From: Epiperipatus broadwayi
Taxonomy: Eukaryota; Animalia; Onychophora
Direction of reading: 5' to 3'
Assembly (NCBI GenBank): GCA_028023455.1
Contig: JAQFVV010000003.1
Location: forward strand, 4,154,001 to 4,218,000
Length of the DNA stretch: 64,000 bases
This document shows, piece by piece, positions 16,642 to 61,384 of this stretch. The notes below the pieces were generated by a model. The model worked only from the letters and a program-made list of their open reading frames with translations, was not told the origin of the DNA and made no database searches. The stretch's first letter is position 1. Each line of letters opens with the position of its first letter. A program made the position numbers and the translations under genes.

Positions 16642-18309
16642 ATTAATTACAGATGGGAAGGGAGTACAAATGTAAAACAATAAACATCTTTAACAATGTC
16701 AAATATTTTTATTAGATGAAAACTTAGTAAATATAAATTGCATCTTACTATTTTCCCTCTATCTCACATGTCATTGTTCCAGAAGAATATTAAATTCATT
16801 TTTTCAATGATAATTTTTTTATTCAAACTTGGCAATATATTCCTATGTCATATTCTCACAAATCTACATTGAATAATTCAGTAGAATTTATGCTGTGGTG
16901 TGTGTCACTAGTTATTGTACTGGTCACATATTATACACCAACAACCTAAGCCGCGGTTGGATTCAAACCCAGTTAAAACAAAGAATTAAACCCAAAGACC
17001 AAAGTGAATTTAAACTCAACTCACGAGCTCAAATCAAACCAATGGATAACATATGTCAACAGCACATGACTATGTGCCAAGAAACTAGCTCAACGGATGA
17101 TGATGATTTCTGAGACCCCTGCTCTGACTCTACTAATGACTATGGATATTTATAAATCAATTCGTATATTATGTTTGGGTTGCCAATACAGACAGCGAGC
17201 ATTAACATTGAAATAGTTATTAAATAATGAGGAAAGTCAAAACCAAATGTGTTATATAAAATGTTTGATAATAATAAATATTTTGTTCAAATGTTTATGA
17301 TTGGCATTTTATATTACTTCTAGTCTTTAGAAATGGGAGTTAACAATTTACAATAAGTAATGGCAGTCGTGCTCATACACCAATAATTAATACGCAATTA
17401 TGGGAGAAATATATGTCTATACTCCGACAAGTAAACAAAGGCAAATAAAAGTATTTTGCTGGGAAAGAAATTATCATTCTAATTTTATAGACGAAAGATG
17501 TGAGATTCATTTCCACACATCCATAAAGCAATTCACGAAAAGCATGATAAGTATTTAGGGCATAACTTTAATGTTGAACAAAGAACTTATTTATTTATAA
17601 ATGAATATGAAGTTGTTTGACTTTAATAAAATCAATTCATTACGATTTATGATCATGAGAGCGGGGCTTTATCGGAACTGAGAAATAAACAGTACTAACG
17701 ACTTACGAGCATTAAGAACAAATACGAAATATAATGGCTGGTGATTTAAAAAGTAAAAAGAGCGGCTTGTGTTCTACAAGTCTTTTCTAATATTTTTGAT
17801 TTTTTTACTACATTTTTAAAATTGTAGATAATTGAAATTGTAAATGGTAAGAGTATGGATATGGAAAGACTAATGTATTTTTTTATTACTGTATGATGTT
17901 ACAAAAATGTTCTTTGTTTTTTTGTAAAAATTTTGTAATACAAATTTAAATAATTTGAAAATTTTAAAGAATGTATTAATCATACTAGAAAACTATGTGG
18001 ATTATGTAATGAAGTATCTAATGTATTATTCTTATATATACATTCAAATTTATCACTTCTTAATTTTTTTTAAATGAATGATCAGTTGTGAATTTTAGTT
18101 TTAGAACGTGAATTGGGAAAAAGAATATAATAAGCCATAGATTTTGGTCATCCTGTTAAAATTAATTGTCCTATAAAATTGGATTGGGTTTTTTTATATC
18201 TTATCTAATCCCTACTTTTAGGTCATCAATTATTTTTTGCTTCTTCACATACATAGTTCCTTTCTACTTCAATTTTATACTTTCTTTAATAAATAATATG
18301 TAGGTGGTT

Positions 18310-18628
18310 TGAATTCAGATTTTCACACGACACTCAACTATTCGTGTTATCTCATACTGCTAACACTTGGTCACACACATGTAAAGATAAACAATCACCA
18401 ATATTCGTATTTCGTGCTAAACCAGCACTCGTCATTTGGTCCAGATTATCATCTCCATACATATATACAATCAATGCTCAGCTTATATTAAGATAGCCAA
18501 CTGACGAGTGCTGATTTATCACGAAATATGTATTTTGATTGTTTATCTTTTCAATGTGCGTGTGATCAAGTGTGTCAACAGTATGAGATTGCGCGAATAG
18601 TTGAGGTCGTGTGAAAGTCTGAGGTTCA
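18310..18628. mobile_element. Fold-back element with decayed hammerhead ribozymes in both arms
   Basis: Inverted arms of about 130 bp. The + arm has CCAA CTGACGA GTGCTGATTTATCAC GAAA TATGTA TT TTGA (18497-18538). The - arm has CCAA ATGACGA GTGCTGGTTTAGCAC GAAA TACGAA TA TTGG (18398-18439). Stem II sequence is shared with the 30-kb copies. Confidence 0.75.
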
Positions 18629-20689
18629 CCCTCCCCCCCCATATATTACATATTGGAGTGCAGATAAATAATGTCATGTCTTTTCACTTTTTTTTCAATA
18701 TTTTAATATGATCTAACTTTATCTTTTCTATCTCTTTTCCAAATCCACATTTCAAAAGGCCACTCCCGTAATTGTCCAAGTCTCTGCTCCAGATCAAGTT
18801 ACATTTCAAATAAAACATTTTGCAAGCCCTTTATTAAAAGTGAGTTTTGCTATTTTAATTCTCATTTTAATATGTATCAATACATTTTAAATTAGGCAAC
18901 TGATTAACAAGTATTCAAGGATTAAATCTTAATTTTTTATTACTCTCTTTAATAACAGTTTTTAAATCTGATGTTGACAACACATCACAAGACATAGTTG
19001 TAGAAGTACTTTTTCCCTGTGTTATTGAATAATTGTTTAAAAGGCTCATTAATTAAAATTAACTTTATTTTGTAATACGTAAAGATATATGGTATTAAAT
19101 TTATTGTTCATTTGCATTTAAGCTCTTGGCCAAAGATAAATCTATTAGGTCCAAACAAAAATTACTCTACACAATCTTCATAAGGAATGTTTTTGTGCAG
19201 TTTAACATAATGAGAGAATGATGTCTCGAGAGCTGAAGGTTTTTAGATCAAAGCCTAATCTGCCACTTATCATTGACAGTCCAACTGATTAACAGTTTGA
19301 TCTTTTTTTTTTTTCATCATAAGGCATTGTTTGTCACTAATTAAGTCTTTGTATGAATGCTGACATTATATAATATGCTTTAGTATATGGGTAGCTGCAG
19401 GTGAAATAACTTGTTATTAAGATTCTAGAATGATGTTAAGAATAATCAATTCTCTGATATTATAAAAGGTAGTTTGTAATCAAGCCTAATAATTTAGATG
19501 ATAGAATAAGGTTTGGCAAACAAATGTGCAGCAAGCATTGATGTGTTCATGGTACTACTATATTTTATTTAATTTAGTTATTTTATGTCTTTAGATGGCA
19601 ACTAATATTTCTACAAACTTTTAAATGAAAATTCAAAAGCAAAACAACCAAATATATTTGGAAAAAGTTATTAGTTTGTGAAGGGTCAAAAGTAGATTTT
19701 TTTTTCATCTAAGGGTAAAATAGTTGTAACTTTTTCTAATGATGAGATGAAAGTATAATAAGATTTGACTTAGTTCATCAGATCTCTTGTGTAGAAAAAA
19801 GTTATTGAATTTTGAATTTTTGATAAAGGCTTTTAAAATAAGTTATCCAACTTATAATGTAAATACAACTAGACTAATAATATAAACAAGATTTCAATTT
19901 TTTTGAATTTTTGTCTGTTTAAAAGCTGTTGTATTTTGGGTGTATTAATGTTGAATACAGTGTTCACTACTTTGGTGTTCTTAGTGTATGTTAGGTATTA
20001 AAAAAACTATGTAGTATTTGATTTGTAAAGAGAAAGCACATGAAGTTTTTGTATTGCACACGAAGTTCAGCTTCATTCCTGAACAATCGTCTGCAATATA
20101 CTGTATATATATTTTATTGGGCAATAATTATATGGTTAGTTGTTTTGGGAGTCATGTGATGTTGAACATCCTAGTGGTTGATTAACAAATCATTCAGTTG
20201 GATTGTTTTTTATTTTATTCAGTTGTGAATCATTTCCAGAAGCTTTAAATTTGGTTGTGGTGATAGAAATATAAATAAGAGAGGAGACAAACTTGTTCAG
20301 TTCACAGAAAAAGAAAAACTTTATAATATGAATTTTTTCTTTGAGAAAAATACTAAACGGAAATGGACATAGAAACATCCAAATGAAGGTACAGAAGAAT
20401 TGGATTATATTTTGACTTTAAAAAAAAAAAGGTATTTAAAAATTGTAATGTTCTTAATAAATTCATCTTAGGAAGTAATAATCAATTAGTGAAATGTAAG
20501 ATACATATTATTGCAAAACTAGAGACAAAAATTATTAATAAAACTGTATTCACTGCTAATATTTCTAATCTTAGAAACATTGCAGTGAATTTAAATTATA
20601 ACTTGTATATCATTTTCAAATGTTAACAGATCTTGAATGTGATAGATTTGGGCGAAATCAATAACATAACTGATATACTTAAAAATTGC

Positions 20690-26000: not shown

Positions 26001-27113
26001 AGGGTTTTGAGATTTTTAATAATCAAAATTTGAAAAACTGGTAAATTTTTTTTTATTGCAAAAAATATATGATATTCTGTATATGTAAAATGAAAGGCAT
26101 TAAAAAAATTTTAAAATGAGCAAAAAAAAAAAAAAAAAGGATTTTTATGATAAAAGATTACATTTTATATTTTTGATTATTTTAAAAATTCTGTAAAAAA
26201 AAAAATATAATTTTAAAAATTTGGATTTTTAAAGCGCTCCATAAACTTAAGTGATATATCAAAATTCAAATGAATCTAAAACAGTATATATATCCCAGGC
26301 TAATTTGACATTGAATTATCCTATGATGATATATTAGATTCACCAAATAATTATTTGGTTACTTAACTTATCTGTTTAACACACATATATTTGGAATGAA
26401 TGTGCAAAGATATATCATATTTATTAAACTTTAACAAAAGCTTTTGAGTCACAGCTCTATTCATATTACAATAAATCTTGAATCATAATTTTGATTTTTT
26501 TTTGTGAATTTGATGATGATACTTTTATTAATAGAAATGTTGTGTCTTGATAATGTTAGAATCATTGCATTCATTGTCTATTGGATGGCAAAATTGTTTA
26601 AAAATGAGATATAAAACTAACAAAATTACATATAGAACAGCTATATAAATATATATAAAATTGTATATTATTTATTCTGTATATTATGTTTTATAGTCAA
26701 TTCTTTGAAGTTAATTGGATCTCTATATGAAAGTCTTATTCTATTTTACTAATGTTTTTTGTTATTTTACATTATTACGGAACACTAGATAGTATTCTAT
26801 CTGCAATAATTGGTTAATATTATAATAGATGGTTAACATTTGAAAAGGGCACAAAACCATGTCCTGAAAAAAACTTTTTAGGTATAATTATTATTAATAT
26901 AGGTATATTTATATAGCTATTGTATATGATTTGTATTATTTGTTATAATTTATGTGAAAGAACAGCATAATGGATTTCATTTAGTTCAACATTTTGATGA
27001 TACTAACAAAATACTTTTTGTCTCATGTCAACCATTGTGCTTTCCTAATATTAAAAAATTTACATAATAGCAGAATTTTATTATAATATCTGCTTAATAA
27101 ATTTAAAATATTA

Positions 27114-27960
27114 CATCATCATCATCATTATCAACCATTATCAATCCACTGCAGGATGAAGGTCTCCAAGTTTAATCCATCTTCTCCGATCTTTAGCTTC
27201 TCTTCTCCACATCACCCCTACACATTTTCTTATTTCATCCATCCATCTTACATGTGGTCTCCTTCTGGGTCTTTTACAATCTCTTGGAATCCAGTTTAAA
27301 ATTTCAATTGTCCATCTATTATCATCTCTTCTAGCAATATGTCCAGCCCAACTCCACTTCAATCTTTTAATTTTTTCAATGAGGTCAGTAACACCTGTTT
27401 GTTCTCTTACCCATACATTGCGTTTTCGATCTCTTCTTGTTACTCCCAACATACATCTCTCCATACTTCTTTGAGTGGTCTGAAGTCTCTGTATTGATCT
27501 TCTATTAAGTGTCCAAGTCTCAGATCCATAAGTAAGAACTGGTAAAACACATTTGTTAAAAACCTTTCTTTTCAAACACATACGCATATTTCCCTTTAAT
27601 ATCAAGTTATTTCTACCAAAAGCACTCCAACCAAGTTTAATTCTATGATTAATTTCCTCTATTATGTTTCCATCTGTATTAATAATCTGACCAAGGTATT
27701 TGTAACTCTTAACTTCTTCTAATTCATCATAATCAATCTTTATTTTCATATTTGGAGCAAATCGATTAAACATTACTTTAGTCTTTTTAACATTTATCTT
27801 TAGTCCTACTTTCGGTACTTTCATCTGATAACTCCTGCAACATTTCCTGCAGCTCGGAAGCCTTATTTGCAAAAACAACTACATCATCTGCGAAATCTAA
27901 ATGACTTAAATAATCTCCATTTACTTTCACTCCTTTAGTTTCCCATTTTAATCCACAAAA
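27114..27960 (-). mobile_element. 5'-truncated RTE-clade LINE, best-preserved copy, (GAT)n tail
   Basis: Track ORFs 27787-28002 (YLSHLDFADDVVVF) and 27141-27878 (KVGLKINVKKTKVM...LTYGSETWTL...WSWAGHIARR); ends with a (CAT)n repeat on the + strand at 27114-27127. Confidence 0.92.
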
Positions 27961-30249
27961 TACATATAAATAAATAAATAGAATGGTCAAATTATTTTTC
28001 ATTAGTCAATAAAGTGGGAAAACCATTAAATGAAACAAATATATATGTGCAATATTTTAATATTTTTGATATAATCATCCAAAGATTAGATAAACATGGT
28101 ATTTATATATTGATTTCTGTTGAGCATGTTGATTGTATTTTTCATGTCATTAAATTCTCAGATAGAAAAAATATTAAATACAAGTAAAAGAAACAGATTA
28201 TATTTTTAAAATAGATAAGTGATATTAATACTTTGAAATGTAAAAAGCATTCCATGATTATTAATAATGGATTGTTTTAATTGTCTTTATAGCTTAAATG
28301 TATAATGTCATAAAGACAAAATTTAGAAAATGGAAATTTACCTTTTGAAGAAGCGTAGAGGTATTAGTGACTTACTCAAGAATTAAAGGCTTGGGCATCA
28401 CTACTGTTCAGCTGAATAAAGAGGAAAAAATTACAAATTAATCCTGTTGGGTTTAATCTGTTACTTAAACACTAACATTGCTTGGTTTTCTGAGCAATCA
28501 ATCATATAATTATTTTTATGCTGAATATATCGTGCATATGTGTGTGTGTGCAATGTTAAACCCCTGGCATAGTTAGCTTTTGTGCTTCTCAAAATTAAGA
28601 ACATTTTATAAATAAAAATGAAACTGATCCAATAATGCAATTATTATTATTTAATTTTTTGTTACATTTTTTGGCTTTATTTAAATAAATTATTAAAGGT
28701 CCATTAATAAATTATCTTTCTAAAACTATTTGAAAGTTATGGGTTAAAAAAAAAAGAGAGAAAGTATAATGTATTTAAGTAATTTAACTTACAATTTTTA
28801 ATCCATTTTGTTAAAGTGACTTAATATTTTAGGAAAATTAGGATGAGTTTATATAAGCACAATTTATTTTCTGCAACAATAAATTTATATTTATCCAATG
28901 ATGGCAACTTTAATAAAATACTTGGGATGTTACTTATTTGTTGATTTGAAACATTTAATGATAATTTATTTTATCAAAATGGAAACTATACTGAAATAAA
29001 CTATATTTAACTAAATAATTGGAATATTATTTTATTTGGTATTGTGTGTGTAGAGATATATTTAGATAGATAATTTAAAAAAAAAGTGAAGACCATTTTA
29101 GAATCCCTCTACAAGTACTTGCTAGGATTATCACTTACCAGTTGTTGGAAATCTGAAATGTTTTTTTCCCCCCTCTGATATTCAGTTTCTGACTAGAATT
29201 GCTATCTTTTTTATTATAGATGGCTTACTAAATAAAAACCAAATGATTTATTTAAAAAAAAAAATTAGTTGCTTTGGAAATCATGATTTTTGAGCACTTC
29301 AAGTGACAGATTAACATTGAATTCAGGAATCTTTGATTCTTAAGTCTATCACTCTACCATTCTGTCAACATACTTAAGATATTGGTTAACTTTTAAACCC
29401 CCCATTCTGAACTTTTTTTGAGATATTTGCTATCTGAAATTTTTTAGCTTCATTCAGTTCTTAATTTCTAGATTATGGTCATGGGTATATATTAGATTAA
29501 GCATTGTACTATAAGGTAGGGTTTTGAAAATGTAAGCATTTAACCATACATATAAATGCCTGTTTTAATTCAGTATGATATAAAATATAGATTCAATCTT
29601 GAATTTATTTATATTGTTATTATTTGATTTTGGTAAGTTCTTCAAAGTGAAGATGCCTAACTGCTTTTCTTTTTTTAAATATTCTCTTAGCTGGGAAGTA
29701 ATATGGTAATATCTTTCAAATATATGCTTTTTAAAAATGTTTCAAATACAATAATATATTCATTTCTAGTATAACCTTTAGTTCCTTAATATATGTTAAT
29801 TTAAATAAACATTCTCAATTTTTTCAACTGAAAATAATAATTTTTCTTATTATCAAACAAGTTTCAAAAATATGAAATAACTGAATAAGCCCTATTTCGG
29901 ATCTGATTATAACAGGGTGAACAGAGCTGGAAAATAATAAAGGCAGGAATTACTGTTAAAATGTTGAAAGATTTTAATAAATAAAATATGAAGTATATTG
30001 TAACTTATTAAACTTGATTGAAGACCTGACCTTTTCACTAAAATTTATCAGTGTAATTAATGTAATATGTATAGCCCATTCTTTAATCATCAATAAATCT
30101 TCCATTATAAAGCACTCAATTTATTTTCTTGTATTTCGATCAACTGTTAATCATAGTTAAATATTTGTTAATAGATGTAATAAACACTTCTATACTTAAC
30201 TCTATTCTTTTTAAATTCATATAAATAAAGATATAATAAAAAGACAAAT

Positions 30250-30302: not shown

Positions 30303-30593
30303 ATTATCTCTCATATATATCTATTACATGCAAAGTATTTATCTAGAGTAATTGTTACATTTCCATTTACCATTGTCAAACTCCCTCCACTCACAACTTT
30401 GACTTCATCCATTTCAGATAAATACAATAATGATTATATAACTAATCATTTTCGAAACTAGAGATTATCTCTAGCACAGATTTTCTGACGTCAAAGTTGT
30501 GAGTGGAGGGAGTTTGACAATGGTAAATGGAAATGTAACAATTTACTCTAGATAAATATTCTTCATATAATAGAGATATATATGAGAGATAGT

Positions 30594-30646
30594 GACCTGG
30601 GCCAACTGATGAGTGCTGGTTCAGCACGAAATGCATCTTGGGGGTC
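30594..30646 (+). ncRNA. Type I hammerhead ribozyme (minimal, Penelope/retrozyme type)
   Basis: GACC-TGGG-CCAA / CTGATGA / GTGCTG-GTT-CAGCAC / GAAA / TGCA-TC^ / TTGG-G-GGTC. Complete core, 6-bp stem II, palindromic ATGCAT stem III, bipartite stem I; predicted cleavage after 30637. Confidence 0.9.
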
Positions 30647-31738
30647 TTTTATCTTTTATTATATCTTTATTTATATGAATTTAAAAAGAATGGGGGGAAG
30701 TATGGAGGTGTTTATTATATGTATTAAGATATTACACATGGGACAGAGAAAGGTGAATAACTCCGTGTTTGTGTAAATTTAAAAAATCAGATATATTAAT
30801 CTTTAACTGACGTTTAAAGTTTATATCTGTGCTAGAGATAATCTCTAGTTTTGAAAATGATTAGTTATAATCATTATTGTATTTATCTGAAATGGATGAA
30901 GTCAAAGTTGTGAGTGGAGGGAGTTTGACAATAGTAAATGAAAATGTAACAATTTAAATATTTTTGTTGTTAAATTAATAATTCTCATTATAGAAATTCA
31001 AAAATGACCATGTCACTGGGGAAGCCTTTACTAATATTATGGAGATTGTGATGTTTAATGGTCTAATATTATGTGTTGAATAAACTTGTCTACAAGCACT
31101 CATAGAATAATTATGAAACTTATTCATTTAAAAAATTATTTAAACTCTTAGATTGAATTTATATTTAATAGTAATTTCCCCTCAAAATAAATATGTACTC
31201 TGTCTTTTTTTGTACAAATAGAAATGCAAGCTATTATCTATAAAGGGCACAATATATTTTGTAACTTATAATACATATAGAATTTTTTTTGTTTTATTTT
31301 TCCAATTTTTTTTATTGGGAGTAGAATGTAAATAGACATTAATTTTTTCATATGAATAATCGAAATATATATTTTAAATAAAATATTCTTACATAACAAA
31401 CATGTTAAGAAGTTAATTGAATTCATAATGAAGAAGGTCAAAAAAATTGAAACAATCTTACAGATATAATTGAACTATTTCTAGTAGATTTTTGCTTTTG
31501 GATTTTAAAAAGATATGAAATGTGATTAAATTTGTGAGACAAAAATAAAGATTGTGATTAATTCATTTTTATGATGAAAATTTGAATTACAGCAATACCC
31601 AGTGAGTTGCAATGCAATTTTGTTTATTTAAACTTTAATGTACCATGTACAAGTGATACAATATGTGGTTTGCTATATTTATTGCTGAGTGGGGAAAAAA
31701 AACAATTTACTTAATGGTGGAGAGTTAAGTTTCTATTC

Positions 31739-43265: not shown

Positions 43266-43467
43266 GCCACACCGGAGGCCGTAATCCGTGCCGTTGTAAA
43301 TTACGTACGCGGCCTACAAAGCATTGACAATCTTGATACCATTGGAGAAAATGTTTTTAGATTTGCAACTACTCAGGCAGAAAAAATACAAAAATTTAAA
43401 CATTGTGTTCAATATTACCTTAATGGCACTAATGATGGCTTCCTCCGCTACCGCCCAACAATGCAAG
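43266..43467 (+). CDS. Coding exon of host gene (ATPEAVIRAVVNYVRGLQSIDNLDTIGENVFRFATTQAEKIQKFKHCVQYYLNGTNDGFLRYRPTMQ)
   Basis: tttgtag acceptor, AAG|GTGAGT donor, 202 nt open, GC much higher than flanks, phase 0 to 1. Confidence 0.85.
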
Positions 43468-43823: not shown

Positions 43824-43963
43824 TAAAAAAACATGAGCCGGGCCATTATCAGCCAATTCGCCAGGCCCGGGATTCATCCAGTCAACGCACCTCTGATTCA
43901 GCCACTGTGTCCACACCTACAAATGCAGCACAATTTGCCTCAGAAGCTCAGGATGATGGTGAG
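43824..43963 (+). CDS. Coding exon of host gene (VKKHEPGHYQPIRQARDSSSQRTSDSATVSTPTNAAQFASEAQDDGE)
   Basis: ttttttaacag acceptor in phase 1 matches the previous donor. Open frame overlaps track ORF 43697-43993. GAG|GTACTT donor is phase 0, with an alternative G|GTGAGG donor at 43958. Confidence 0.75.
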
Positions 43964-46900: not shown

Positions 46901-49853
46901 TATTACATGATAAATAAAATAGTACAGGAGCACCAAGATGCAACATTGCATAAGCATACACACATTTCTTATTTTCGTTAATAGGAATTATAATCATTTC
47001 CATTTCCTTTTTTTTTTATAAACATTGTTACAAGTATAAAAGATGTCAAATTTAATAATTATGTATACTATATTTCATCTTTTGTACTTTTAAATAAAAC
47101 AGATGTCTGTTTAATGTAAATATTATTCAAGGCTTTACTGATTTATGGTTAGAGATGGTTGAAGTCTTGCTATAACTGATGTTCTTTTGAAACTGATCTT
47201 GTGAGCCTTCTCATAATTTACAATTCTAAATTTGATAATAAAAACTATCTAATATTTATTTTCATATATAAGCCTAGATGCTCTTATTTATAGATTATTT
47301 ATAAACGTATGATAAGATATTAATCGAATTAATTTCGAAACAGGGATGGTTCAGAGTATCGAATGGTGTACCTGAATAACCAGTTTATACAAAACATTGT
47401 TAATGCAAAGTTTTTGAAATATATATTAATGAAAATGGTAACAGATTTAGAAAATAATTTGTAAATAATGAGGAAAACATTTTGGAGAAATTGTATACAC
47501 ATGCCTCAAAGCTAAGGATGCATTCCAGGATTGGAGAACTAAGAAATAACTTAGTGTAATATTAAATAAAATTAAATATGTAATATTAAATAAAATTAAA
47601 TAGGTGAAAAGACAAATATGCCAAATAAATGAATGGTGAAGTTTTTAATCATTTTTTTTTTGTTTACTTGGCAGCAAAAAAAAAAATATTTTTTTTAGAC
47701 ATAAGTTACTTATGAAGCACTTTATATTTTAAATATATATTGTATAAACTATATTGTTATTCACAAAATTGCTCCAATACATTAGCAGTCAATTTTAAAA
47801 AAAAAACAAACAGAAAATTCATTCTTGTACACAAAGTTGTTAGGTAAGCAGTCTTATATGAATATTTTTCAAACTAAGATATTAGGATAATTGTTTTAAT
47901 AATCATCATCATATTTTTTTATGATAAATGTATTAAAATCAACTGCTTTAGAAATATATTTATTATAAATGAAATAATGTTGCAGCTTTAGTGGAGGTGG
48001 CATAATTGATAGTTAAGATTTGTATAAACAAAGATGAATTGTATTTGGTAGCTGAAACATTAACAATTAATTTCAGTTGAAATGGGCAAAAAAAAAAGTT
48101 AAAGAATAGACTAAAAAGATGAGATTATATAAAAGTCATTAACAGATTTTTCTAATAATCAATAAAAAAAAACAAATATTACCGACTGGCATTCTGATAT
48201 AGACACATTCTTAAAAATAAAAATCAGAATGGTTCAAACATTTAAATTTTTTATGACTATCTACAAATGTCTAAGTTAAAAAAATTGAAGAAATATGATA
48301 TGACGAGTGGATGGTGTTGATATTTTCAAATGGTGCTAACAATGAAGATTTTCAACAATATTATAGATAATAAGGGAAATAACATTTTATCAGATTAAAT
48401 CTAATTTAGCGAATAAATTATTTTGATCATTATGGGATTATCTAATTTATTAAAAGTATATAAAGCTCTTAGTGAAGGAAGATGACTGTCAATGAAATGA
48501 ATAGGATCTTGTCATAATTAATGAATGCATCATTGATAATCCTGAAAAACAAAGAAGATAATAAGTTGTTTTGATTACCATTAATTAACGTCACATTGAC
48601 ATATCTGATATTAATAATTTCATGTTTACTGCATTATTGGATAATCCTATTTTTATTTGAATTTAATTTTTCCTGGAAAGTTTCATATTGTCTACAAAAT
48701 ATTAGATTATAATATCTGTGCTAATTGCAGTCTATACTGACAAATTTATACTTTATAAATGCATCCAATTATATTAAACCAACTTAAAACATAAATCTAG
48801 AGTACATAAACAATTCCCAGCCTATGTTAAACACAAATTTGGAACTTACTTTTTATTTATCTAATGCTGTGCTAATGTTTTTTGTGATATAGAACTTGTT
48901 TTCATTTGTTTAAAAAAATGCTTTCATATTCTACATTATTGTCAATGAGAACTATGTATTTGAAAAAAAAAAAAAAAAATCCATATGCAGAAATTTGCTG
49001 AATGGATTGCTTAAGCAAGTCAAGGACTAGTTGTGTATGATTTAATTTGTATTTTCAAGTAAATTCTTTATTCACATCTTATGTAAGTTAAAAAGATTAT
49101 TGTAATTTTTCTGCATCGATATGGTTTTATAAACTAAGTAGTGTGACAAACTAGCATATAAATACGAATACTGATATTCCAATTACGACATTGTGATTAA
49201 TCTTGATTTATACTGCAGTTTTACATTGCTTATGTAAATTCCCATAGGATTGGTATATAATAATTGTATTTAATCATTAAGAAGTAAAAAAGTTGCACTT
49301 TAGAATGTCATCTTTATTGTAATTAGTTTAGTTGTTGGCTTTTTTTTTATTTTTTATGGCAATGCATTTCATTAGTATTAAATTTTATTCATGATTATGA
49401 ATGTGAAATAATGAATCCATTATTTTAATGTTATCTGCTTTAAGAATTTTGATATACTGATGGATTTATTTGATTAATATTGATAGAATTGATATTTTCA
49501 TGGGATAGTATAATCATCTGATCGTATTCAATCATTATATATATCTTGTAGAAATTTGTATTTATTTAGGGAAAAACAAATTTTCATTAGACATTATAAT
49601 TTTTCTTAGGCTTGGTTAATTTTAAAATAATTTTTTTTTGTTAAAAGTCTATTTTTATTTTTAAAATTTGGTTCAGCATTTTGTCACATTGGCACTGTTA
49701 GAGAAGTTTCCTTATTACCAATGAAATTGATGTATAATAATGTCTTAGTTATGCCATATTTTTCACTATTGTCATGTTGACTTTTATAATGTTTTATATA
49801 AATACATTTAGTTATGACGAAAAGATAAAGCAGCTTTAAATAATCCACTATAT

Positions 49854-51577
49854 TGTAACAAGGTGCGGACTGAGGAGAGCAATGGTCCGCCTAAAGTTAC
49901 AAGAGAAATGGGTATATATATACTAATAAGACTATTAGCTAATAAAGTTACTAATAAGTGTAAATATTAACATTTAATGGTGATGGGAATATTTAATATT
50001 AACCGTATATTATTCATATATTTATTTAGAGGTAGTTGTTAGACTATAAAAGAAAAAAAAAAAATAAACATCGTAGAACTCGTGTTTTGTTGGGGTGTTT
50101 GTGGTATGCGAATATATATATGTGCGTGATTGATATACTTCGAGTGGATGGCAAATTGGAACAAAACGAGATCCGTCTGAAATGCGAATGTATTTTGATG
50201 CGATGGCGACCGCAATGACGCAGTCATGGTCTATTCGGATGACGCAACCAGGGATTTCGCCGGAGGGGATCCCGAAAATGGATGAGAAAGGACGAGAAGA
50301 AAAAGGATATAAAAGAAAATAGAGAGGGGATAAGAGTCTTCTTGCACGGGTCCAGAAAGTAATCAGAATAAAAGTGTATCATGCATCGAGTGGGGTAAAA
50401 ACCTCAACTTGACAGGCGATGAAGGCCTGCCCCACAGTCCAGAAGGTGCTGCAAGGAAGAAAATCAAAGAACGCCGAATTCCGGTTATCGACGGCAAAGA
50501 ATAGTGATCGCTACGGAGAAATGAACCACGAGATCATCCGGTTATAGAGCCTTTATCATCGTAACCCATGCTTTTGGAATATTGAGGTAACGTGAACTTT
50601 ATCAATTGCCTATTGAATTGCTATTACCACACAATCCGAGTGTTAAACGGATTGTGTCATCCATTGGAACTTTGGAATAATTTAATTTTCTATGATTAAA
50701 ACCTGTTTTAATAAAATATACCAACTACAAAGTCCGTGGAGGCAGTTTAATAGACGAACAATATTAATGTGTTTTGTGGGGCCTATTAAAATCCAAAGAA
50801 TAATTTATTTAATCCGTACATGTATGCGTATGCTATAACATTCAATGAAACACGAGTTGTAAATAATGGGGGGTGGGTTAACTAAATGAATTTTAATATT
50901 TTCTTTTTGTTGTATAATAAATTGTTTTACATTAAAAATATCTTTGGAATATTTTTCTTTCGCTTTGTATTTATATTATGTCAATCAAGTTCATAGTTAG
51001 GGCAAAAAAATGTCATAATTAAGGTAAAACGTATACTATACCTCGAAGAACCAGCTTATAAAACTTTAGTATAGGGTAGCGAGCGCACTCCTCCGAAACT
51101 AGTCGAGAACTTCATTCTGCGCAGGGAAAACTAATCGATAAGGTTGGATTTTTAAATCGAGTTAGTTATCAAATATACAGTTGATTACGGATATTAATCC
51201 ACTTCCAGTTAGAGACAGTAGTGTTGGAATCCCTAATTCCCGTCCACGGTCTATTGACCACCACTCCCTGAGATGAGCTAGGCTAATGAACACCACCCCT
51301 TTTCTTACTTACCGCGAAAGGTAAAGCGACAGCAAATATTTATTGAGTCGCTATCGGGGTTTATTCTGCATTAATAGAGTCCCGCGGTGTAATTCTTATT
51401 TGTTCATCGCAAATAGGTTTGGCGCTTGGAAGCAAACACGCTATCCATAAATATGCCCGGGAATCATGCAGAGACAAAATAAATTCATATATCTATAAGG
51501 TTAAATCTTAAGTTAACTATAGCCAGTCCTATGAATTTATTAATACGACCCTTCAGCGGGCAAAGCGGTTCGTTATA
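49854..51577 (+). repeat. 5' LTR (1724 bp, TGTAAC...GTTATA)
   Basis: Direct repeat of 53141-54868. Confidence 0.95.
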
Positions 51578-51579
51578 AC

Positions 51580-51603
51580 TGGACGCCGCAACTGTGGGGC
51601 CTC
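51580..51603 (+). promoter_or_regulatory. Primer-binding site complementary to the tRNA-Lys(CUU) 3' end, with four 1-nt bulges
   Basis: TGGaCGCCgCAACtGTGGGGCcTC starts 2 nt after the LTR. Removing the lower-case bases gives TGGCGCCCAACGTGGGGCTC, the complement of the conserved metazoan tRNA-Lys(CUU) 3' end. Confidence 0.75.
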
Positions 51604-52169
51604 TGGAGAGCGAGGGGGAATAGGAAGATAGTAGAAGGTTCAAATAAAAGAGGGCGCAACGACCAGTGGATTTGACACGAAGTCGGGATATTGAGCAAAA
51701 CTCCGATACTTTCACGCATTTTACGAGGTTAAAGAAAAGAAAAACGGCGAATGATTTAAAATTTTTTTTTCCGCGTAGATTTTTTTTATTGTAAAATTTT
51801 TTTTTATTGTTAAAAAAAAAAAAAAAAGACGAATGGAATATATACATGTTAGAGCAATAACACTGGGCCTTATTAACACGCTGGACAGGGATATATATAG
51901 ATATTTTTATACGTTATCTGAGTTATTAATAAAAACTATTGCTGACCCTAAGGGTTTAAGAGGGCTAAATAGAGCGTCTTGGTGAATTTAGAAGAAAGGC
52001 AGCATAGATCGATAATAAAAGAATGGGAAATACGATGTAACAGCACATGGAAGCGTAGCACTATAGAGTAAAAGGACAGAAAGCAACAGCACTGGATGGG
52101 GGGGCGAGGTAGTCAGAGCCTGTCAAGATAAGCTAGCATAGAAGTAATTAACATTAGCGATAGCCAACC

Positions 52170-53072
52170 ATGGAAACTCGGTCTAAGGGAAAAACGGACG
52201 AGGGAGGGGAAGAAAAGGGAGAGATGATGAGAATGATGGAAGGAATTATGAAGAAACTAGAAGATATTGAGACACGATTGAAGAAAATAGAAGACGAAAT
52301 GGAGGGAAGAAAAGGGAGTGTGACGAGCGAGCAGGGCGAGGCCGAAGAGGGGATGGGAAAGCCAGGAGTAAAAGAGGCAAGACTAGCACCTAATAAAGAA
52401 GAGAGTGTGAAATATGCGCCTGCGCCGGGCCACGTTAACTCATTTGTGAGAATCCGACCTTTCTCAGGGGAAGTGGGGGAGGCGCCAACTGAACATTTAA
52501 AGAGCCTGACGAGATATTACCAAGTGAACCCCATGGATGAAAACAGCAAACTGGCTGTTGCCTGTAGCAATCTCACAGGACACGCACAATCATGGTGGGA
52601 CTCACTGTTCAAACCTCCGTCCACATTTCAAAGATACCAGAAGGAACTAACGGACGTCTTTTGGTCGGAGGATCGGCAGGAGATGGTACGTTATCGAATT
52701 ATGCAGGAGAAATACACGGAAGAGAAACGAGAAAGTTTCACGCAGTTCTTCCATCGCCAGGTGGCGCAACTCCGAACGTTAAACGCTTGTAGGTTGACAG
52801 AGGTTGGGATCATTAGGATCATAAGGCAAAATATGCCAATGAGGGTCGAGCAGATCATGTTGGGAACGGGAAAGACGTCGATAGAAGGAATGGCCGAGGT
52901 ACTTACGGGCGTGGATATAAGTACTCACAATTACGGGTTTGATCCGGGGAAAGGAAACCTGGATATCCGCAAGAGATGGGAAACTGAGGCTAAGACAAGA
53001 GGGAAACTCGACTCCGAGACGGCCAGACCGCCTGGGAAGCCCTACCCCAGCGGGAATCGAGCGCCGGATTAA
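52170..53072 (+). CDS. gag: Ty3/gypsy Gag, Arc-like capsid protein (300 aa): N-terminal coiled coil plus capsid lobes, no CCHC knuckle
   Basis: Intact ORF between PBS and PPT. Motifs IRPFSG..APTEHLKSLTRYY, NLTGHAQSWW, ESFTQFF, EVGIIRII and KTSIEGM align from memory with Arc/Ty3 capsid (DPREFLSHLEEY, HMNGPAKKWW, EPLDQFL, EEEIIQYV, PKTLEQL). Heptad-like stretch at aa ~19-46. Confidence 0.85.
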   Translation: METRSKGKTDEGGEEKGEMMRMMEGIMKKLEDIETRLKKIEDEMEGRKGSVTSEQGEAEEGMGKPGVKEARLAPNKEESVKYAPAPGHVNSFVRIRPFSGEVGEAPTEHLKSLTRYYQVNPMDENSKLAVACSNLTGHAQSWWDSLFKPPSTFQRYQKELTDVFWSEDRQEMVRYRIMQEKYTEEKRESFTQFFHRQVAQLRTLNACRLTEVGIIRIIRQNMPMRVEQIMLGTGKTSIEGMAEVLTGVDISTHNYGFDPGKGNLDIRKRWETEAKTRGKLDSETARPPGKPYPSGNRAPD

Positions 53073-53125
53073 CGGAGGCTCCAAGTAAGAGCCTGTCAAA
53101 CCCATAGTGCGTGTTTGAAGGCTTC

Positions 53126-53140
53126 CGAACGGGGGGGCAT
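53126..53140 (+). promoter_or_regulatory. Polypurine tract
   Basis: CCGAACGGGGGGGCAT-type G-run directly upstream of the 3' LTR TGT. Confidence 0.75.
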
Positions 53141-54868
53141 TGTAACAAGGTGCGGACTGAGGAGAGCAATGGTCCGCCTAAAGTTACAAGAGAAATGGGT
53201 ATATATATATATACTAATACTATTAGCTAATAAAGTTACTAATAATCGGAAATATTAATATTTAATGGTGATGGGAATATTTTAATATTAACCGTATATT
53301 ATTCATATATTTATTTAGAGGTAGTTGTTAGACTATAAAAAGAAAAAAAAAAAATAAACATCGTAGAACTCGTGTTTTGTTGGGGTGTTTGTGGCATGCG
53401 AATGTATATATGTGCGTGATTAATGTATTTCGAGTGGATAGCAAATTGGAACAAAACGAGATCCGTCTGAAATGCGAATGTATTTTGATGCGATGGCGAC
53501 CGCAATGACGCAGTCATGGTCTATTCGGATGACGCAACCAGGGATTTCGCCGGAGGGGATCCCGAAAATGGATGAGAAAGGACGAGAAGAAAAAGGATAT
53601 AAAAGAAAATAGAGAGGGGATAAGAGTCTTCTTGCACGGGTCCAGAAAGTAATCAGAGTAAAAGTGTATCATGCATCGAGTGGGGTAAAAACCTCAACTT
53701 GACAGGCGATGAAGGCCTGCCCCACAGTCCAGAAGGTGCTGCAAGGAAGAAAATCAAAGAACGCCGAATGCCGGTTATCGACGGCAAAGAATAGTGATCG
53801 CTACGGAGAAATGAACCACGAGATCATCCGGTTATAGAGCCTTTATCATCGTAACCCATGCTTTTGGAATATTGAGGTAACGTGAACTTTATCAATTGCC
53901 TATTGAATTGCTATTACCACACAATCCGAGTGTTAAACGGATTGTGTCATCCATTGGAACTTTGGAATAATTTAATTTTCTATGATTAAAACCTGTTTTA
54001 ATAAAATATACCAACTACAAAGTCCGTGGAGGCAGTTTAATAGACGAACAATATTAATGTATTTTGCGGGGCCTATTAAAATCCAAAGAATAATTTATTT
54101 AATCCGTACATGTATGCGTATGCTATAACATTCAATGAAACACGAGTTGTAAATAATGGGGGGTGGGTCAACTAAATGAATTTTAATATTTTCTTTTTGT
54201 TGTATAATAAATTGTTTTACATTAAAAATATCTTTGGAATATTTTTCTTTCGCTTTGTATTTATAATATGTCAATCAAGTTCATAGTTAGGGCTAAAAAA
54301 ATGTCATAATTAAGGTAAAACGTATACTATACCTCGAAGAACCAGCTTATAAAACTTTAGTATAGGGTAGCGAGCGCACTCCTCCGAAACTAGTCGAGAA
54401 CTTCATTCTGCGCAGGGAAAACTAATCGATAAGGTTGGATTTTTAAATCGAGTTAGTTATCAAATATACAGTTGATTACGGATATTAATCCACTTCCAGT
54501 TAGAGACAGTAGTGTCGGAATCCCTAATTCCCGTCCACGGTCTATTGACCACCACTCCCTGAGATGAGCTAGGCTAATGAACACCACCCCTTTTCTTACT
54601 TACCGCGAAAGGTAAAGCGACAGCAAATATTTATTGAGTCGCTATCGGGGTTTATTCTGCATTAATAGAGTCCCGCGGTGTAATTCTTATTTGTTCATCG
54701 CAAATAGGTTTGGCGCTTGGAAGCAAACACGCTATCCATAAATATGCCCGGGAATCATGCAGAGACAAAATAAATTCATATATCTATAAGGTTAAATCTT
54801 AAGTTAACTATAGCCAGTCCTATGAATTTATTAATACGACCCTTCAGCGGGCAAAGCGGTTCGTTATA
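53141..54868 (+). repeat. 3' LTR (1728 bp, TGTAAC...GTTATA)
   Basis: Direct repeat of 49854-51577, followed by the ATAT duplication. Confidence 0.95.
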
Positions 54869-57800
54869 ATATGATAAAAAGTCACTTATAATGTGGCAAG
54901 TAAATATTGATATAATTAGAATTTTTTTATCCTTTAACTAAACTTAGCTAGATCCTTTTTACTAATAATTGATGGCTATATATAATTGCATAAACTTTTT
55001 AATAAGTACCTTTTTTTTTTTTTATTGTTAATAATCAATCACTTTGTAATTAAAAATAGAAATAAATGTTGACTTTTTTTTTTTTTTAATTTATAAAATA
55101 AGTTAATTGGTAATGAATCATGTGGTCTTCATTATCCATTTTTTTTTACAAATTAAAATGCCATACTGCAAAATTTTAATGTAAAAAATTATTTCAAAAG
55201 TAGATTTAAAAAAAAAAAAATTGAAAAACGATTAAATATTCTTCTGAAAGTTAATATTAATCTTTTTTAGAAAATCATGTTGCATCTGATTTTAAAATAA
55301 AATCCAATCAAAAAGTTGTATGTAAATAAATAAAATTCAGAGCTTAAAAAGTTTTCTATCACATTTAACAAAAATGCAGTCTAATTTTGTGTAAACCATA
55401 TGCATTAGATATGTATGTACATATATAAATGCTTATAAAGTATAATTTTTTTTTTTCCCCCAACAAACTTTTTAAAAATTATTTTCCCTGTATATTTGTT
55501 TGAAGATTACAATAAATTTTCTTACACAAGACAAATGTTAACATACAAATCTTATGAAAATCGCATAATTCATGTAAATGAATTTATTTTGAAAATTGGC
55601 TTTACGTTAAAACAAAAAAATGAAATACTTATTCTGCATGAAGGCCTTTTTTAAATATATATATTGAAAGTGAAGTCAAACATTATTATATTAAATTGAA
55701 ATAGAATAAAAGAAATAGATTATCTTTCCTGGAAGTAGTGTTTAGATTGCAAAATGTAGTAAAAGAAATAATTATAAATAATGTAGATGTTTGACTCCTT
55801 TTATTGAAATAAGTTTAAATGGTGATATAAAATTAATACTAACTTTCAGAACGATATTTAATGGTTTTTCAAATTTTTTTTTTTTAAAAATCTGCTTTGA
55901 AATAACTTTTTACATTAAAACTTTGCAGATATTTGGTTAGAAAGTCTGCAAAGAAGCAAGATCATTAATTTCAAAAAATCATTAAGTATATAATTGTTTG
56001 TTTTGATCTCATTTAAAATATTTTAAATGTGTATTGGGTTTGGTTATGTTGTTCTTAATATGGGAGTTAAATTGTACTATATAAGCAGTTTGCTTAAAGC
56101 TCTCTCATAGAGAGATTTTTATTATGATGCAGAATAGTCAGAAATTGACTTAATAAAAGATTCATCATAAGAAAAATATTTGCTGTTTTTAAAAAAATCA
56201 TCAGAAGTAAGATTGCATTTAAAATTTTTACAAATTTAAACTTAAAATAAAAGCGTAAAAAATTTTTTTTCTCTCTTTTTCTAAAGCAAATATAAGTTAT
56301 CATGGCATATTAAATGCATTTAAATGATCATTTAAGAATGCATTATTGAAAATTTTATGATAAAGTGTAAATTAAATGCAACACTTTACTTTTGGAGATA
56401 GAATTTAAATTTTAAAAATAATTGACACCTTGCAATTAATAAACATTAAATTTGATCTATTAAAGAATAACAAGATCTCTTCCCCCTTAATTATGATTGA
56501 ACAATCTAAAAAAATAGAGAAACAATATCCATTTTATCATCTAAAAAGAAATAAAGATAATTTAATAACTTTATAAGATTAATGCCTGTGATTTAAACTT
56601 TGTTTTATTTTTAGCTATCTCACTTTATTGAATGTTAAAATAATTTACTTGCAAGATGTTTTATGCAACTCCAAATTTTGGAACATATTCTACATGCTAA
56701 CTATTGTTATTGATTTTACCTTTTTTATAACCATTTACATATAAATATTTGAATATATAATCTGTTCTTATACTCTTATCTTGTTCAATTTTATTAAAAA
56801 AAATAATTTAATTGCTAATCTAATTAATAAACTTTTTTTTTAAATATGTATTTTTAATATTTTTTTCAATTTGTATTTTTTATTACAATTTCTATTTGTA
56901 TTTAAGTTCATTATACAATTTAATGTTTGTAAGGGACTATAATATCATATACATTGTCTTGGAAAAGCAGGCTGTTATAGACATTAGAATATTTTTATTA
57001 CTAAGCAACTAATATAGAGAAATGGCATTGATATCAGTTTTCCTTTATTTATCAAATTCATTAACAAAATTTTATATAATAAAAATCTTCCTTTACTTAG
57101 TGTTTTTTTTTTTTTTTTGTGACGGGTATATTTAGATTTAATTCTGCCTATCATTACTTTAAACTTATTTCACCAATTTCAATTTATAATTAACAAACAA
57201 ATACTTTATATATGCATATAACATAGAATTAAAATACAGATTTGTTTATTAAAGTGTGAATAGATATTTTTAATTTTATACAATTGTTTTTTTCCTTGTA
57301 TTTGAAAAATGTGCTTTTATTTAAAAAATGCTTTTTATAACTCATTGAGACTAAGCTGCCATATTGAATTTTTTAAAATACTGGCCTGAGACACAATTTT
57401 CACAATAACTTCAGTTTTAATTATGTTAGAGCAAAAACAATTAAATTGCTAGAAACTAGAAAAACGAAGGAAAACAATAAGCATAAAATAAATAATGATA
57501 ACTATATAAAAAAATAAGGAAAAAAGAAATTTTCACATCCGAAATAATTATTATTTTATTGTTTGTTCATAATTTGGAAATTAAAATTAACTAAAATTTA
57601 GATTACATCTTCAGTGATAATTTCTTTGTATTCCTCACAAAATTATCTTTCTAAATATGTATAACATGACTTACCTGAGATAATCCACAGCTTCACAATT
57701 TCCACAAGAAGTCGGATATGACTTCTTCATTTTTATTTTGTACCCCAAATGTTCTAAATGTCAAAGGCATCTATAAAGAAAAAGATTCATCCTAATAAAA

Positions 57801-58817
57801 GATTTAAAAGAAATCATCATAGCAATTGGCTTCTTGTCTATCTAAAACTAGAAATTGTAGGCTGCTGTCACTAATAAAATGGGTTTCATCTCTTCATTTT
57901 ATATTTTTTGTGTACATCAGTGATGTTTATATTCTTTATGCACACAAATGATGTTTATATTCTTTATGTACAGAAGTGATGCTATCTTGTTATATTTATT
58001 GTATCACGTAGATATAATTTCTTTGCATATAATCCATTTGTTAGCTATAGACTTGAAAATAATGTTATGAAACATATAGCAAAACCAGAGTGACTCCAAA
58101 GCATGAACAAGAATAAGCAAAAACATAAACAAGAATCAGAATTTGATTATATGTTTGCGCATGCAATCTTTCTATACATTTGATTATTAGTTTTATAACT
58201 CATTACTTGTAAACACAAACATTATATAAACATAATTATAAATAATAAATTATACTTTTTGAAAATTATTATTTTTATAAAAATAAGTGGATTAGTGTAG
58301 GTAGAACTTTAGAAAATTACAATAGATATGAATTCTATATGAGCATATATAACTACACACTAATTACAAACTAAAATTAATAAAAAAGATAATTTTTTTT
58401 CTTCAAAAAATTAAAAAAAAAATTTAAATATTAAAAGAATTAAAATTTTATACTTACAAGTAATTACATTGAAGCTTTATTGTAGGCCTTGTTTGTGAAT
58501 AACATGCGGCAAATGTTAACTTGCATTCGGTAAACCATTTTTTTTCTTTTAGTGCTTCATGGTAATTACAAAAGTTATCAAAAAAGAAAAAAAATTAAAT
58601 ACTGTGGTCGATTAAAATTGTTGCCAAAATCCAAATTTCAACCGATTTTTTTGAGGTAAACATTTTCCGAAAGCTACGTCATTGAGCTATCAAATGCCCG
58701 TATTTTGGTTGACGTTGTGCTTATACTTTTTGTCAGTAAAGAAAGAAAACGTCATCCAACAAGGGCTCAAAGAGCTCCCACAGCGCACCACATGAGATTA
58801 ATCCATCTATTCATATT

Positions 58818-60560
58818 TCATCATCATCATCAACCATTATCAATCCACTGCGAGATGGTCTTTCCAAGTTCAATCCATCTTCTCCGATCTTTAGCTTCTC
58901 TTCTCCACATCACCCCTGCACACTTTATTTCATCCATCCATCTCACATGTGGTCTCTTTCTGGGTCTTTTACAATCTCTTGGAATCCAGTTTCAGATTTT
59001 AATTGTCCATCTGTTATCATCTCTTAGCAATATGTCCAGCCCAACTCCACTTCAATCTTTTAATTTTTTCCATGAGATCAGTAACACCTGTTTGTTCTCT
59101 TACCCATACATTGCGTTTTCGATCTCTTCTTGTTACTCCCAATATGCATCTCTCCATACTTCTTTGAGTGGTCTGAAGTCTCTGTATTGCTCTTCTATTA
59201 AGTGTCCAAGTCTCAGATCCATAAGTAAGAACTCTTAAAACACATTTGTTAAAAACCTTTTCAAACATATGGGTATATTTCCTTTTAGTATCAAGTTATT
59301 TCTACCAAAAGCATTCCAACCAAGTTTAATTCTATGATTAATTTCCTCCATTATGTTTCCATATGTATTAATAATCTGACCAAGGTATTTGTAACTGTTA
59401 ACTTCTTCTAATTCATCATAACCAATCTTTATTTTCACATTTTGAGCAAATTGATTAAACATTACTTTAGTCTTTTTAACATTTATCTTTAGTCCTACTT
59501 TCATCTGATAACTCCTGCAGCTCTGAAGCATTATTTTCAAAAACAACTACATCATCTGAAAAATCTAAATGTCTTAAATAATCTCCATTTGCTTTCATTC
59601 CTTTAGTTTCCCATTTTAATCCACAAAATACTTCTTGCAGCTTGCTATAAAAAGTTTTGGAGATATGGAGTCACCTTGTCTTACACCCTTCTCAATGTTG
59701 ACTTTCCCAGTATCATTATGTAATCTAATTGTTGCTGTTGCATTTTTATAAATATTCTTTAAAATATGACAATATCCTGGATCTATACCTTGATGATCCA
59801 ATGCTTTAATCACTGAAGAAATGTTTATAGAATCAAATGCCTTTTCATAATCTACAAATGCAAAACATAATGGCAACTCATATTCATTTGTCCTTTCTAT
59901 AACTTCTCTCAATACCTGGATATGATCTACTATACTAAAACCACTTTTAAATCCAGCTTGTTCTCTTGGTTGGTGGAAATCCAATGTTTCTCTGTAGACG
60001 AGTTGTAATTATCTTGATAAAAATTTTGTATAAAACTGATAAAAGGCTGATAGGTCTGTAGTTTCTAATATCTTCTTTATCACCTTTTTAAAATATTAAT
60101 ATTATTATTGCATTCTCCCAATCATCTGGTACATCTTTATCATTTAGACATTTGGTATATAACTTTGCTAAAAAAAATTTCTATTTCTTTACCTGCTTCT
60201 TTTAATATATCAATTATAATTCCATCATTACCTGGAGCCTTTCCTTTCTTCATATATTTAATTGCATGTCTCACTTCTTCATTTAAAATTCTGGCAATTC
60301 GATAGATGTAATAGATACAGGAGGCACTTGTTCTTTATTACTATATAATTCTTGATAAAAGTCTTCTACCCATTTCATGATGTCATCTCTCTTTTTAGTA
60401 ATAATTTCATCTTTTTTTCTTATTACAGATATAAATTACCTACCAATACCAAAATGTTTACTAAGACAATATTCATTTCATGTATTCTTACCCATATATC
60501 TATATAAAACATATACTAATTATTATAATGTCAAAAACATGTTTGCTGATATTTTTTATA
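58818..60560 (-). mobile_element. Decayed RTE-clade LINE, (GAT)n tail
   Basis: Track ORFs 59616-59984 (EQAGF..FVDYEKAFDSI..KGVRQGDSISPKLF), 59235-59546 and 59017-59268 are frameshifted pieces of RT; (CAT)4 tail at about 58819. Confidence 0.92.
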
Positions 60561-61128: not shown

Positions 61129-61384
61129 CTGTCTGATATCAATGCCTACACTCAGGCTGCATCCGGGTATGGCAACCACGGCCAGTCATCCAATATGCCC
61201 CAAATAGTGATTGATCCACCCAGTCAATCACAGGCTGACCTGAGCCAGAACCTGGCCAGCGAGATCCAGAGCCAGCTGGAAAAGTCGCTAGAGAAGTTCG
61301 ATGACGACTCTGCTGCTGACGAGGATGGTGAGGCTGATGGTCAGATAGGGGGTGATGTGCAATCCTCCGACCTTCACTCTGCTG
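61129..61384 (+). CDS. Coding exon of host gene, low-complexity S/Q/D-rich (LSDINAYTQAASGYGNHGQSSNMPQIVIDPPSQ...DLHSA-G)
   Basis: Long pyrimidine tract plus TAG acceptor, CTG|GTGAGC donor, 256 nt open, GC-rich island; overlaps track ORF 61195-61542. Confidence 0.8.

Follow-up and report, generated by a model that had tools for sequence, protein, structure and literature searches.

Retrotransposons with long terminal repeats (LTRs) that carry gag and no pol are an established type, the TR-GAG elements, described from plants in 2015 as non-autonomous, gag-only LTR elements; they are defined as multi-copy families whose members have different target-site duplications (TSDs) and are usually under 4 kb in length (PMC4350172). 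The same paper lists BARE2 of barley among the elements that are without a functional GAG domain (PMC4350172). An earlier note, made from the sequence alone, had drawn attention to an element in a 64,000-nucleotide stretch of the genome of the onychophoran Epiperipatus broadwayi (GCA_028023455.1, contig JAQFVV010000003.1, positions 4,154,001 to 4,218,000 of the forward strand), and had described it as a recently mobile, gag-only LTR element that encodes an intact, Arc-like capsid. Its statement that TR-GAG elements had been described from plants agrees with the paper just cited. The observation at the heart of that note was confirmed by the analysis reported here, and its interpretation was supported in part. 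The whole 64-kb stretch is referred to below as the window; coordinates are positions in it, and all parts of the element lie on its + strand.

The element (49854-54868, 5015 bp) is explained best, with modest confidence, as one non-autonomous LTR retrotransposon of the Ty3/gypsy type (Metaviridae-like), present as a single copy, that kept gag and its cis-acting signals and had lost pol before it integrated. When the region 49000-56000 was compared with itself, a single long direct repeat appeared (49852-51578 versus 53139-54869, 98.6% identity over 1732 columns by BLAST), and the limits of the LTRs were set by reading the four junctions. The 5′ LTR (49854..51577) measures 1724 bp and the 3′ LTR (53141..54868) 1728 bp; both begin with TGTAAC and end with GTTATA, which together make an imperfect terminal inverted repeat, and at 98.8% identity they are the two long, near-identical terminal direct repeats by which an LTR retrotransposon is recognized. 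In a global alignment of 1724 columns the pair differs by 20 substitutions (14 transitions and 6 transversions; p = 1.16%) and by 4 single-base indels. Directly outside the LTRs, the same 4 bp, ATAT, were read on the left (49850..49853) and on the right (54869..54872), a TSD within the 4-6 bp range that such elements produce, for which a chance match at exactly this position was estimated at ~1% in DNA of 25% GC.

Between the LTRs lie 1563 bp (51578-53140), which consist of a 592-nt leader (51578..52169) with seven upstream ATGs, a gag open reading frame (ORF) of 300 codons plus a stop (52170..53072) and, finally, 68 nt. A sequence resembling a primer binding site (PBS) and starting with TGG is located 2 nt past the 5′ LTR (51580..51597), and at the other end of the interior the G-rich purine tract GAACGGGGGGG (53127..53137) has the character of a polypurine tract (PPT), though it is short and is separated from the 3′ LTR by a 3-nt spacer. 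Within the leader there is an AT-rich block of low complexity (51741..51830; GC 0.18) that contains 1.9 copies of an 18-nt unit and a stretch of 17 consecutive A. The gag ORF is bracketed by a 16-nt direct repeat with 15 of 16 positions identical, one copy being found 44 nt before the gag ATG (52111..52126) and the other, which begins with the splice-donor-like GTAAGAG, 12 nt past the gag stop (53084..53099). The score of this repeat against the leader was reached by 5 of 2000 shuffles of the 68-nt segment that follows gag; the repeat may be a recombination scar, a signal or chance. Every number given in the earlier note for a complete element with TSD, LTRs, PBS, PPT and a gag-only interior was reproduced. 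Two other candidates for the structure were rejected, namely a tandem segmental duplication, since the element has a TSD, sites resembling a PBS and a PPT, and gag, and a host gene that merely resembles gag, since the ORF sits between the LTRs.

The lack of protease, reverse transcriptase (RT) and integrase (IN), which had been claimed for the element, was borne out by tblastn searches that used as queries the 1400-aa pol of a relative described below and every relative that was fetched, among them two Gag-Pol proteins (1569 and 1664 aa). These queries matched the gag ORF alone within the window, and no pol remnant was found in the element or in the rest of the 64 kb. No other credible ORF of at least 80 aa was present in the element, and neither of the two remaining frames is open near the gag stop, so that no relic of a gag-pol frameshift or of a pol start was seen there. 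The pol gene is thus missing as a whole rather than broken. A single Gag ORF with neither RT nor other pol domains is likewise what marks a TR-GAG element, and the parts that were retained are exactly those that an element mobilized in trans needs, i.e., the cis signals, gag with its own stop and 68 nt with the PPT-like tract.

The gag ORF has no internal stop or frameshift and, as remote homology and a predicted structure show, encodes a real Gag with a two-lobed capsid (CA) domain of the retroviral type. When the single protein was compared with Pfam, Retrotrans_gag was matched below threshold (E=0.012), and when it was compared with the PDB using phmmer, Arc alone was returned (E=0.75); it took a profile of relatives to reveal the relationship. 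Such relatives were collected by exhaustive phmmer against 1.84 billion representatives of about 15 billion proteins with a cut-off of E 1e-3 or better, which yielded 194 remote relatives (best E=3.4e-12, at 27% identity) with matches centred on residues ~95-255, and several of them also aligned with the N-terminal helix region of the Gag. Some of these relatives stand next to pol. The 718-aa relative P0151 is the gag of a 9.7-kb element, where a 1400-aa pol comes next and has its RVT_1, RNase H and integrase domains in the Ty3/gypsy order; the 321-aa relative P0002 has an RT-bearing ORF 47 nt downstream; and P0011 and P0013, from the beetle Brassicogethes aeneus and the cricket Gryllus longicercus, are annotated as “Retrotransposon gag domain-containing protein”. 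When 60 relatives were aligned, W142, F156, W165 and Q170 proved nearly invariant, and all four are kept in the Gag of the window. The profile made from this alignment reached the capsid domain of mammalian Arc with E=8e-14 and dArc1 with 0.014, and a few of the relatives reach Retrotrans_gag, Arc_capsid_dom or Ty3_capsid in Pfam with weak matches. The assignment to Ty3/gypsy, which is to be read as a putative one, is based on the homology of the Gag to genes of RT-RNaseH-IN elements and on these weak Pfam matches.

A separate observation concerns the 9.7-kb element, which was met in four contigs, each from a different sequencing run and 9.74-9.77 kb long (loci L002-L005). All four represent the same autonomous gag+pol Ty3/gypsy element in circularly permuted form, which arises when the LTRs are collapsed during assembly. 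The 718-aa Gag of that element is extended considerably at its N-terminus, and the extension gives a faint helical match of Apolipoprotein-like character.

The structure of the Gag was predicted with AlphaFold2 from the alignment of the relatives, and the resulting model has a mean predicted local distance difference test score (pLDDT) of 80.8, with residues 90-255 above 90. It starts with a long N-terminal helix (residues 14-49; 52209..52316) that has a pLDDT of ~95 for residues 20-40 and is probably a coiled coil, followed by a disordered linker (residues 50-95), nine helices (residues 106-254), one more helix (residues 263-276) and a disordered tail. The nine helices form the predicted two-lobed CA domain (residues ~96-255; 52455..52934), to which the relatives, the profile, the AlphaFold2 model and Foldseek all point; a CA of this retroviral type is expected of a Ty3/gypsy Gag and is present in the model. 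With Foldseek against the PDB, the capsid chains of dArc1 and dArc2 were matched with target-normalised template modelling (TM) scores of 0.69-0.70 and root-mean-square deviations of 3.4-3.5 Å over about 160 columns, and Arc, PNMA2, the Copia capsid, the CA of the human immunodeficiency virus HIV-1 and the Ty3 capsid were returned as well. The best structural match in BFVD was ORF1 of a fungal metavirus.

The comparison with dArc1/dArc2, Arc and Ty3 CA that had been proposed in the earlier note thus gave a match (TM 0.69-0.70 to dArc1 and dArc2), and the claim of an intact capsid ORF with a CA of retroviral type is upheld by the profile match to Arc, by the AlphaFold model and by the Foldseek matches to dArc1, dArc2, Arc and Ty3. 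The term “Arc-like” is correct insofar as the CA fold is common to Arc and dArc, but what it denotes here is a typical Ty3/gypsy capsid, and the likeness is one to be expected of any Ty3/gypsy Gag. A similar remark applies to the zinc knuckle, whose absence had been pointed out correctly: the Gag has two Cys residues and no CCHC knuckle, yet a CX2CX4HX4C knuckle was found in none of the 157 fetched relatives either, Gag-Pol proteins and gag+pol elements included, and for this reason the lack of the knuckle is a trait of the clade and nothing special to this element. The 45-residue tail of the Gag is mildly basic (net +3), and a length of ~300 aa is full length for the clade, in which relatives of 290-340 aa exist.

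The divergence of 1.16% between the LTRs corresponds to an age of roughly 0.4-6 Myr if the substitution rate is assumed to lie between 1.3e-8 and 1e-9 per site per year. The earlier description of the element as “recently mobile” holds in view of this low divergence, as long as “recently” is understood as a relative term. The composition points in the same direction. The LTRs have a GC content of 0.37 and a CpG observed/expected ratio of 1.22-1.26 (1.22 in the 5′ LTR), and gag has a GC content of 0.49 and a ratio of 0.97; the corresponding values are 0.25-0.26 and 0.31-0.35 in the rest of the window, and 0.32-0.34 and 0.25-0.41 in three old fragments of long interspersed nuclear elements (LINEs) located there. 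Since CpG is not depleted in the element, and CpG transitions make up 3 of the 20 LTR differences, the copy has been exposed only briefly to the process, whichever it is, that removes CpG from the surrounding DNA. The contrast in composition fits a very recent arrival, which may have occurred by horizontal transfer, or an escape from germline methylation; an element that is not depleted in CpG, at a GC content of ~40%, within a CpG-depleted host of 25% GC would fit recent horizontal transfer.

Copies of the element and a possible autonomous partner were sought in large sequence collections. The exact Gag protein was not found in look-ups among about 15 billion predicted proteins, a word-indexed protein search returned no close Gag homologues of 165-525 aa, and the exhaustive phmmer search gave no relative above 27% identity among the 1.84 billion representatives. 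Back-translated scans of viral, metagenome and prokaryote-genome contigs detected no copy of the element, and the start of the LTR, used as an exact 22-nt pattern, was not present in metagenome contigs. The likeliest reason for these empty searches is that the host genome lies outside the collections that were searched, and they are not evidence of uniqueness. One copy only is seen here, and nothing shows that there is more than a single copy.

According to the explanation favoured here, a pol-less RNA would have been reverse-transcribed and integrated as such; an autonomous relative would have provided Pol in trans, and its integrase would have generated the 4-bp duplication. The disappearance of pol would then be older than the insertion, having occurred either in the founding replication cycle, by template switching, or before that, in a TR-GAG-type lineage with gag only, and Gag translated from such a copy could package the RNA of that copy or of a partner. 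This explanation has to be weighed against a private deletion after insertion, in which an autonomous gag+pol element inserted and its pol was deleted later, so that the copy would be dead, with a gag that had not yet decayed, and would never have moved as a gag-only element. LTR elements often suffer internal deletions (PMC3286476, PMC4350172), a single copy in the window and none in the searched collections would suit such an event, and the intact ORF is uninformative at an LTR divergence of 1.16%. The deletion would, however, have needed one breakpoint in the ~55 nt that follow the gag stop and a second immediately before the PPT-like tract, so as to spare gag, its stop and the tract, for which the chance was estimated at 1e-3 or less per random two-breakpoint deletion, and a young insertion leaves little time for the loss of 4-5 kb in place. 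Because the targets for the breakpoints are tiny and the insertion is young, a loss of pol before integration is considered likelier than a later deletion, which is possible but on the unlikely side. Several points nevertheless weigh against the favoured explanation. The LTRs end with TA in both copies (51572-51577 and 54863-54868), i.e., they have TG...TA instead of the canonical TG...CA termini; as non-canonical termini occur in some LTR elements, this still allows membership among the LTR retrotransposons. The PBS-like site is without a tRNA match, and no tRNA genes for its comparison were found in the window or in the fetched loci of relatives. The seven upstream ATGs of the leader argue against efficient translation of Gag, and, together with the TA terminus and the unmatched PBS, they speak against easy function. 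As the insertion is so young (~5 substitutions were estimated to be expected in the 903-nt ORF since it occurred), an intact gag frame is expected by chance and provides no evidence of selection. Finally, no second copy, LTR fragment or solo LTR was found in the 64-kb window, and no close relative or autonomous partner was found in the searched collections.

The breakpoint targets and the youth of the insertion do not tell a one-off product apart from a family that is already established. The earlier note had proposed such a family, borrowing Pol in trans, as a capsid-supplying parasite or as an intermediate towards domestication, which goes further than the explanation favoured here. A multi-copy, TR-GAG-type family with gag only in an animal genome, with gag under purifying selection since its spread depends on its own capsid, is regarded as possible but less likely than not: gag and all of the cis signals were cleanly retained, the nearly invariant CA residues of the wider clade were kept, the fold was predicted with confidence, there is a precedent in plants (PMC4350172), and a reiterated gag-only element of Culex is cited in PMC3286476. 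Set against this are the lack of copies that could be compared for copy number, diversity of TSDs and the ratio of nonsynonymous to synonymous substitution rates (dN/dS), and the fact that nothing more than 27% identical was found among about 15 billion predicted proteins, which may reflect collections that do not contain the host genome. A more far-reaching version, in which an active multi-copy gag-only family of an animal maintains a knuckle-less, Arc-type capsid by purifying selection and obtains its Pol from a partner that is unrelated or unseen, is rather doubtful; if true, such a family would be a capsid-encoding parasite of other retroelements and, at the same time, would exemplify in nature the stage without pol that has to come before an Arc-like domestication. 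That such a domestication is itself under way, with the ORF expressed for a host function and the LTRs used as promoter and terminator, is very improbable. The predicted CA fold is the same as that of Arc, dArc and PNMA2, gag stands alone without pol, and domesticated gag genes such as Gagr do exist in insects (PMC10816282, PMC8956099), but the full and young LTR pair, the TSD and the PBS-like and PPT-like sites are those of a recent insertion rather than of a host gene that has become fixed and conserved, neither orthologues nor close homologues were found in the searched protein collections, and the leader is long and contains seven upstream ATGs.

The surroundings of the element were inspected with regard to the proposal that it sits in sense orientation in a host intron. 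Two exon-like segments upstream (43266..43467 and 43824..43958) and one downstream (61129..61384), all on the + strand, have a polypyrimidine-AG acceptor and a GTGAG donor or, in the third, equally good signals, and the first two are joined in frame. The phase of the third segment does not follow directly from that of the second, and it needs an intermediate exon or another acceptor. A placement in sense orientation within a host intron is plausible because the element lies between these + strand segments and has the same orientation; this part of the proposal stands on the bracketing by exon-like segments, two of them in frame, and is weakened by the unmatched phase of the third and by the lack of a homologue. 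No useful homologue of a host gene was found in Pfam with ten exon-like ORFs, in the PDB with two or in a protein search with one. A strict scan for splice signals missed even clear exons and was left unused.

Several other features of the window were recorded. No Rfam families or tRNAs were found in it. The LINE fragments are of the RTE type, belong to one family and are decayed (5343-5854 on the + strand, 27087-28005 and 58660-60008 on the - strand), with RVT_1 and the C-terminal part represented; their best outside relatives are 63% identical, the named ones are from Branchiostoma, Diabrotica, Apostichopus and Eumeta, and one relative is a contaminant entry labelled Staphylococcus aureus. 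An inverted repeat of ~105 nt with 88% identity (55163-55265 / 55829-55932) encloses ~770 bp at a distance of 300 bp downstream of the element, and may be the remnant of a DNA transposon resembling a miniature inverted-repeat transposable element. Two more dispersed repeat families were noticed by their near-identical ORF translations, one at 12966-13298 and 15832-16092 (- strand), the other at 18293-18645 and 30445-30648.

As it stands, the element is a well-preserved single copy that is useful for annotation and as the seed of a genome-wide census; on its own it has no bearing on whether the TR-GAG concept extends to animals or on how host capsid genes arose. Its likeness to the TR-GAG elements extends to the LTRs, the PBS-like and PPT-like sites, the TSD, the single Gag ORF, the absence of pol and the presumed mobilisation in trans (PMC4350172). 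It differs from them in its length of 5.0 kb, which exceeds the usual 4 kb owing to LTRs of 1.72 kb (the interior being 1563 bp), and in being known from one copy, whereas TR-GAG families are multi-copy. Furthermore, the plant Gags carry a zinc-finger motif (UBN2 + Zf-C2HC in TR-GAG1; PMC4350172) and this Gag has none, and the hosts are plants in the one case and a metazoan in the other, as the RTE-type LINE fragments and the insect relatives of the Gag also indicate. If the gag-only structure were that of an amplifying family in animals, the plant TR-GAG concept would extend to the metazoans, and the family would offer a tractable natural example of a retroelement that has dispensed with its enzymes and kept an Arc-type capsid, a state that is the presumed starting point of the host capsid genes Arc, dArc and PNMA.

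The Gags of autonomous Ty3/gypsy elements of animals (that of the L002-L005 element and those from Brassicogethes aeneus and Gryllus longicercus) have a homologous CA core, with 21-27% identity and E values down to 3e-12; like the Gag of the window they are without a zinc knuckle, and some of them have the N-terminal helical region in common with it. In these elements gag is followed by a pol with RT, RNaseH and IN, whereas here pol is entirely absent, and because the relationship is remote none of these relatives is a candidate partner. BARE2 and other chimeric or parasitic LTR elements are likewise non-autonomous and obtain part of their proteins from an autonomous partner to which they are related. 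BARE2, however, would take its Gag from the partner, and the element described here is the reverse, having kept gag and being without pol.

The predicted two-lobed CA fold is held in common with Arc of tetrapods and with dArc1 and dArc2 of Drosophila, which are domesticated Ty3/gypsy Gags and are 14-21% identical to this Gag in structural alignments. Arc and dArc are fixed host genes that have no LTRs and are conserved across species, whereas the ORF studied here is inside a young LTR element. Arc and dArc form capsids that carry RNA, and this Gag is likened to them by its sequence and its predicted fold. The Gag of the element thus lies outside the Arc and dArc gene families, and is a Ty3/gypsy Gag with a fold like that of Arc and dArc.

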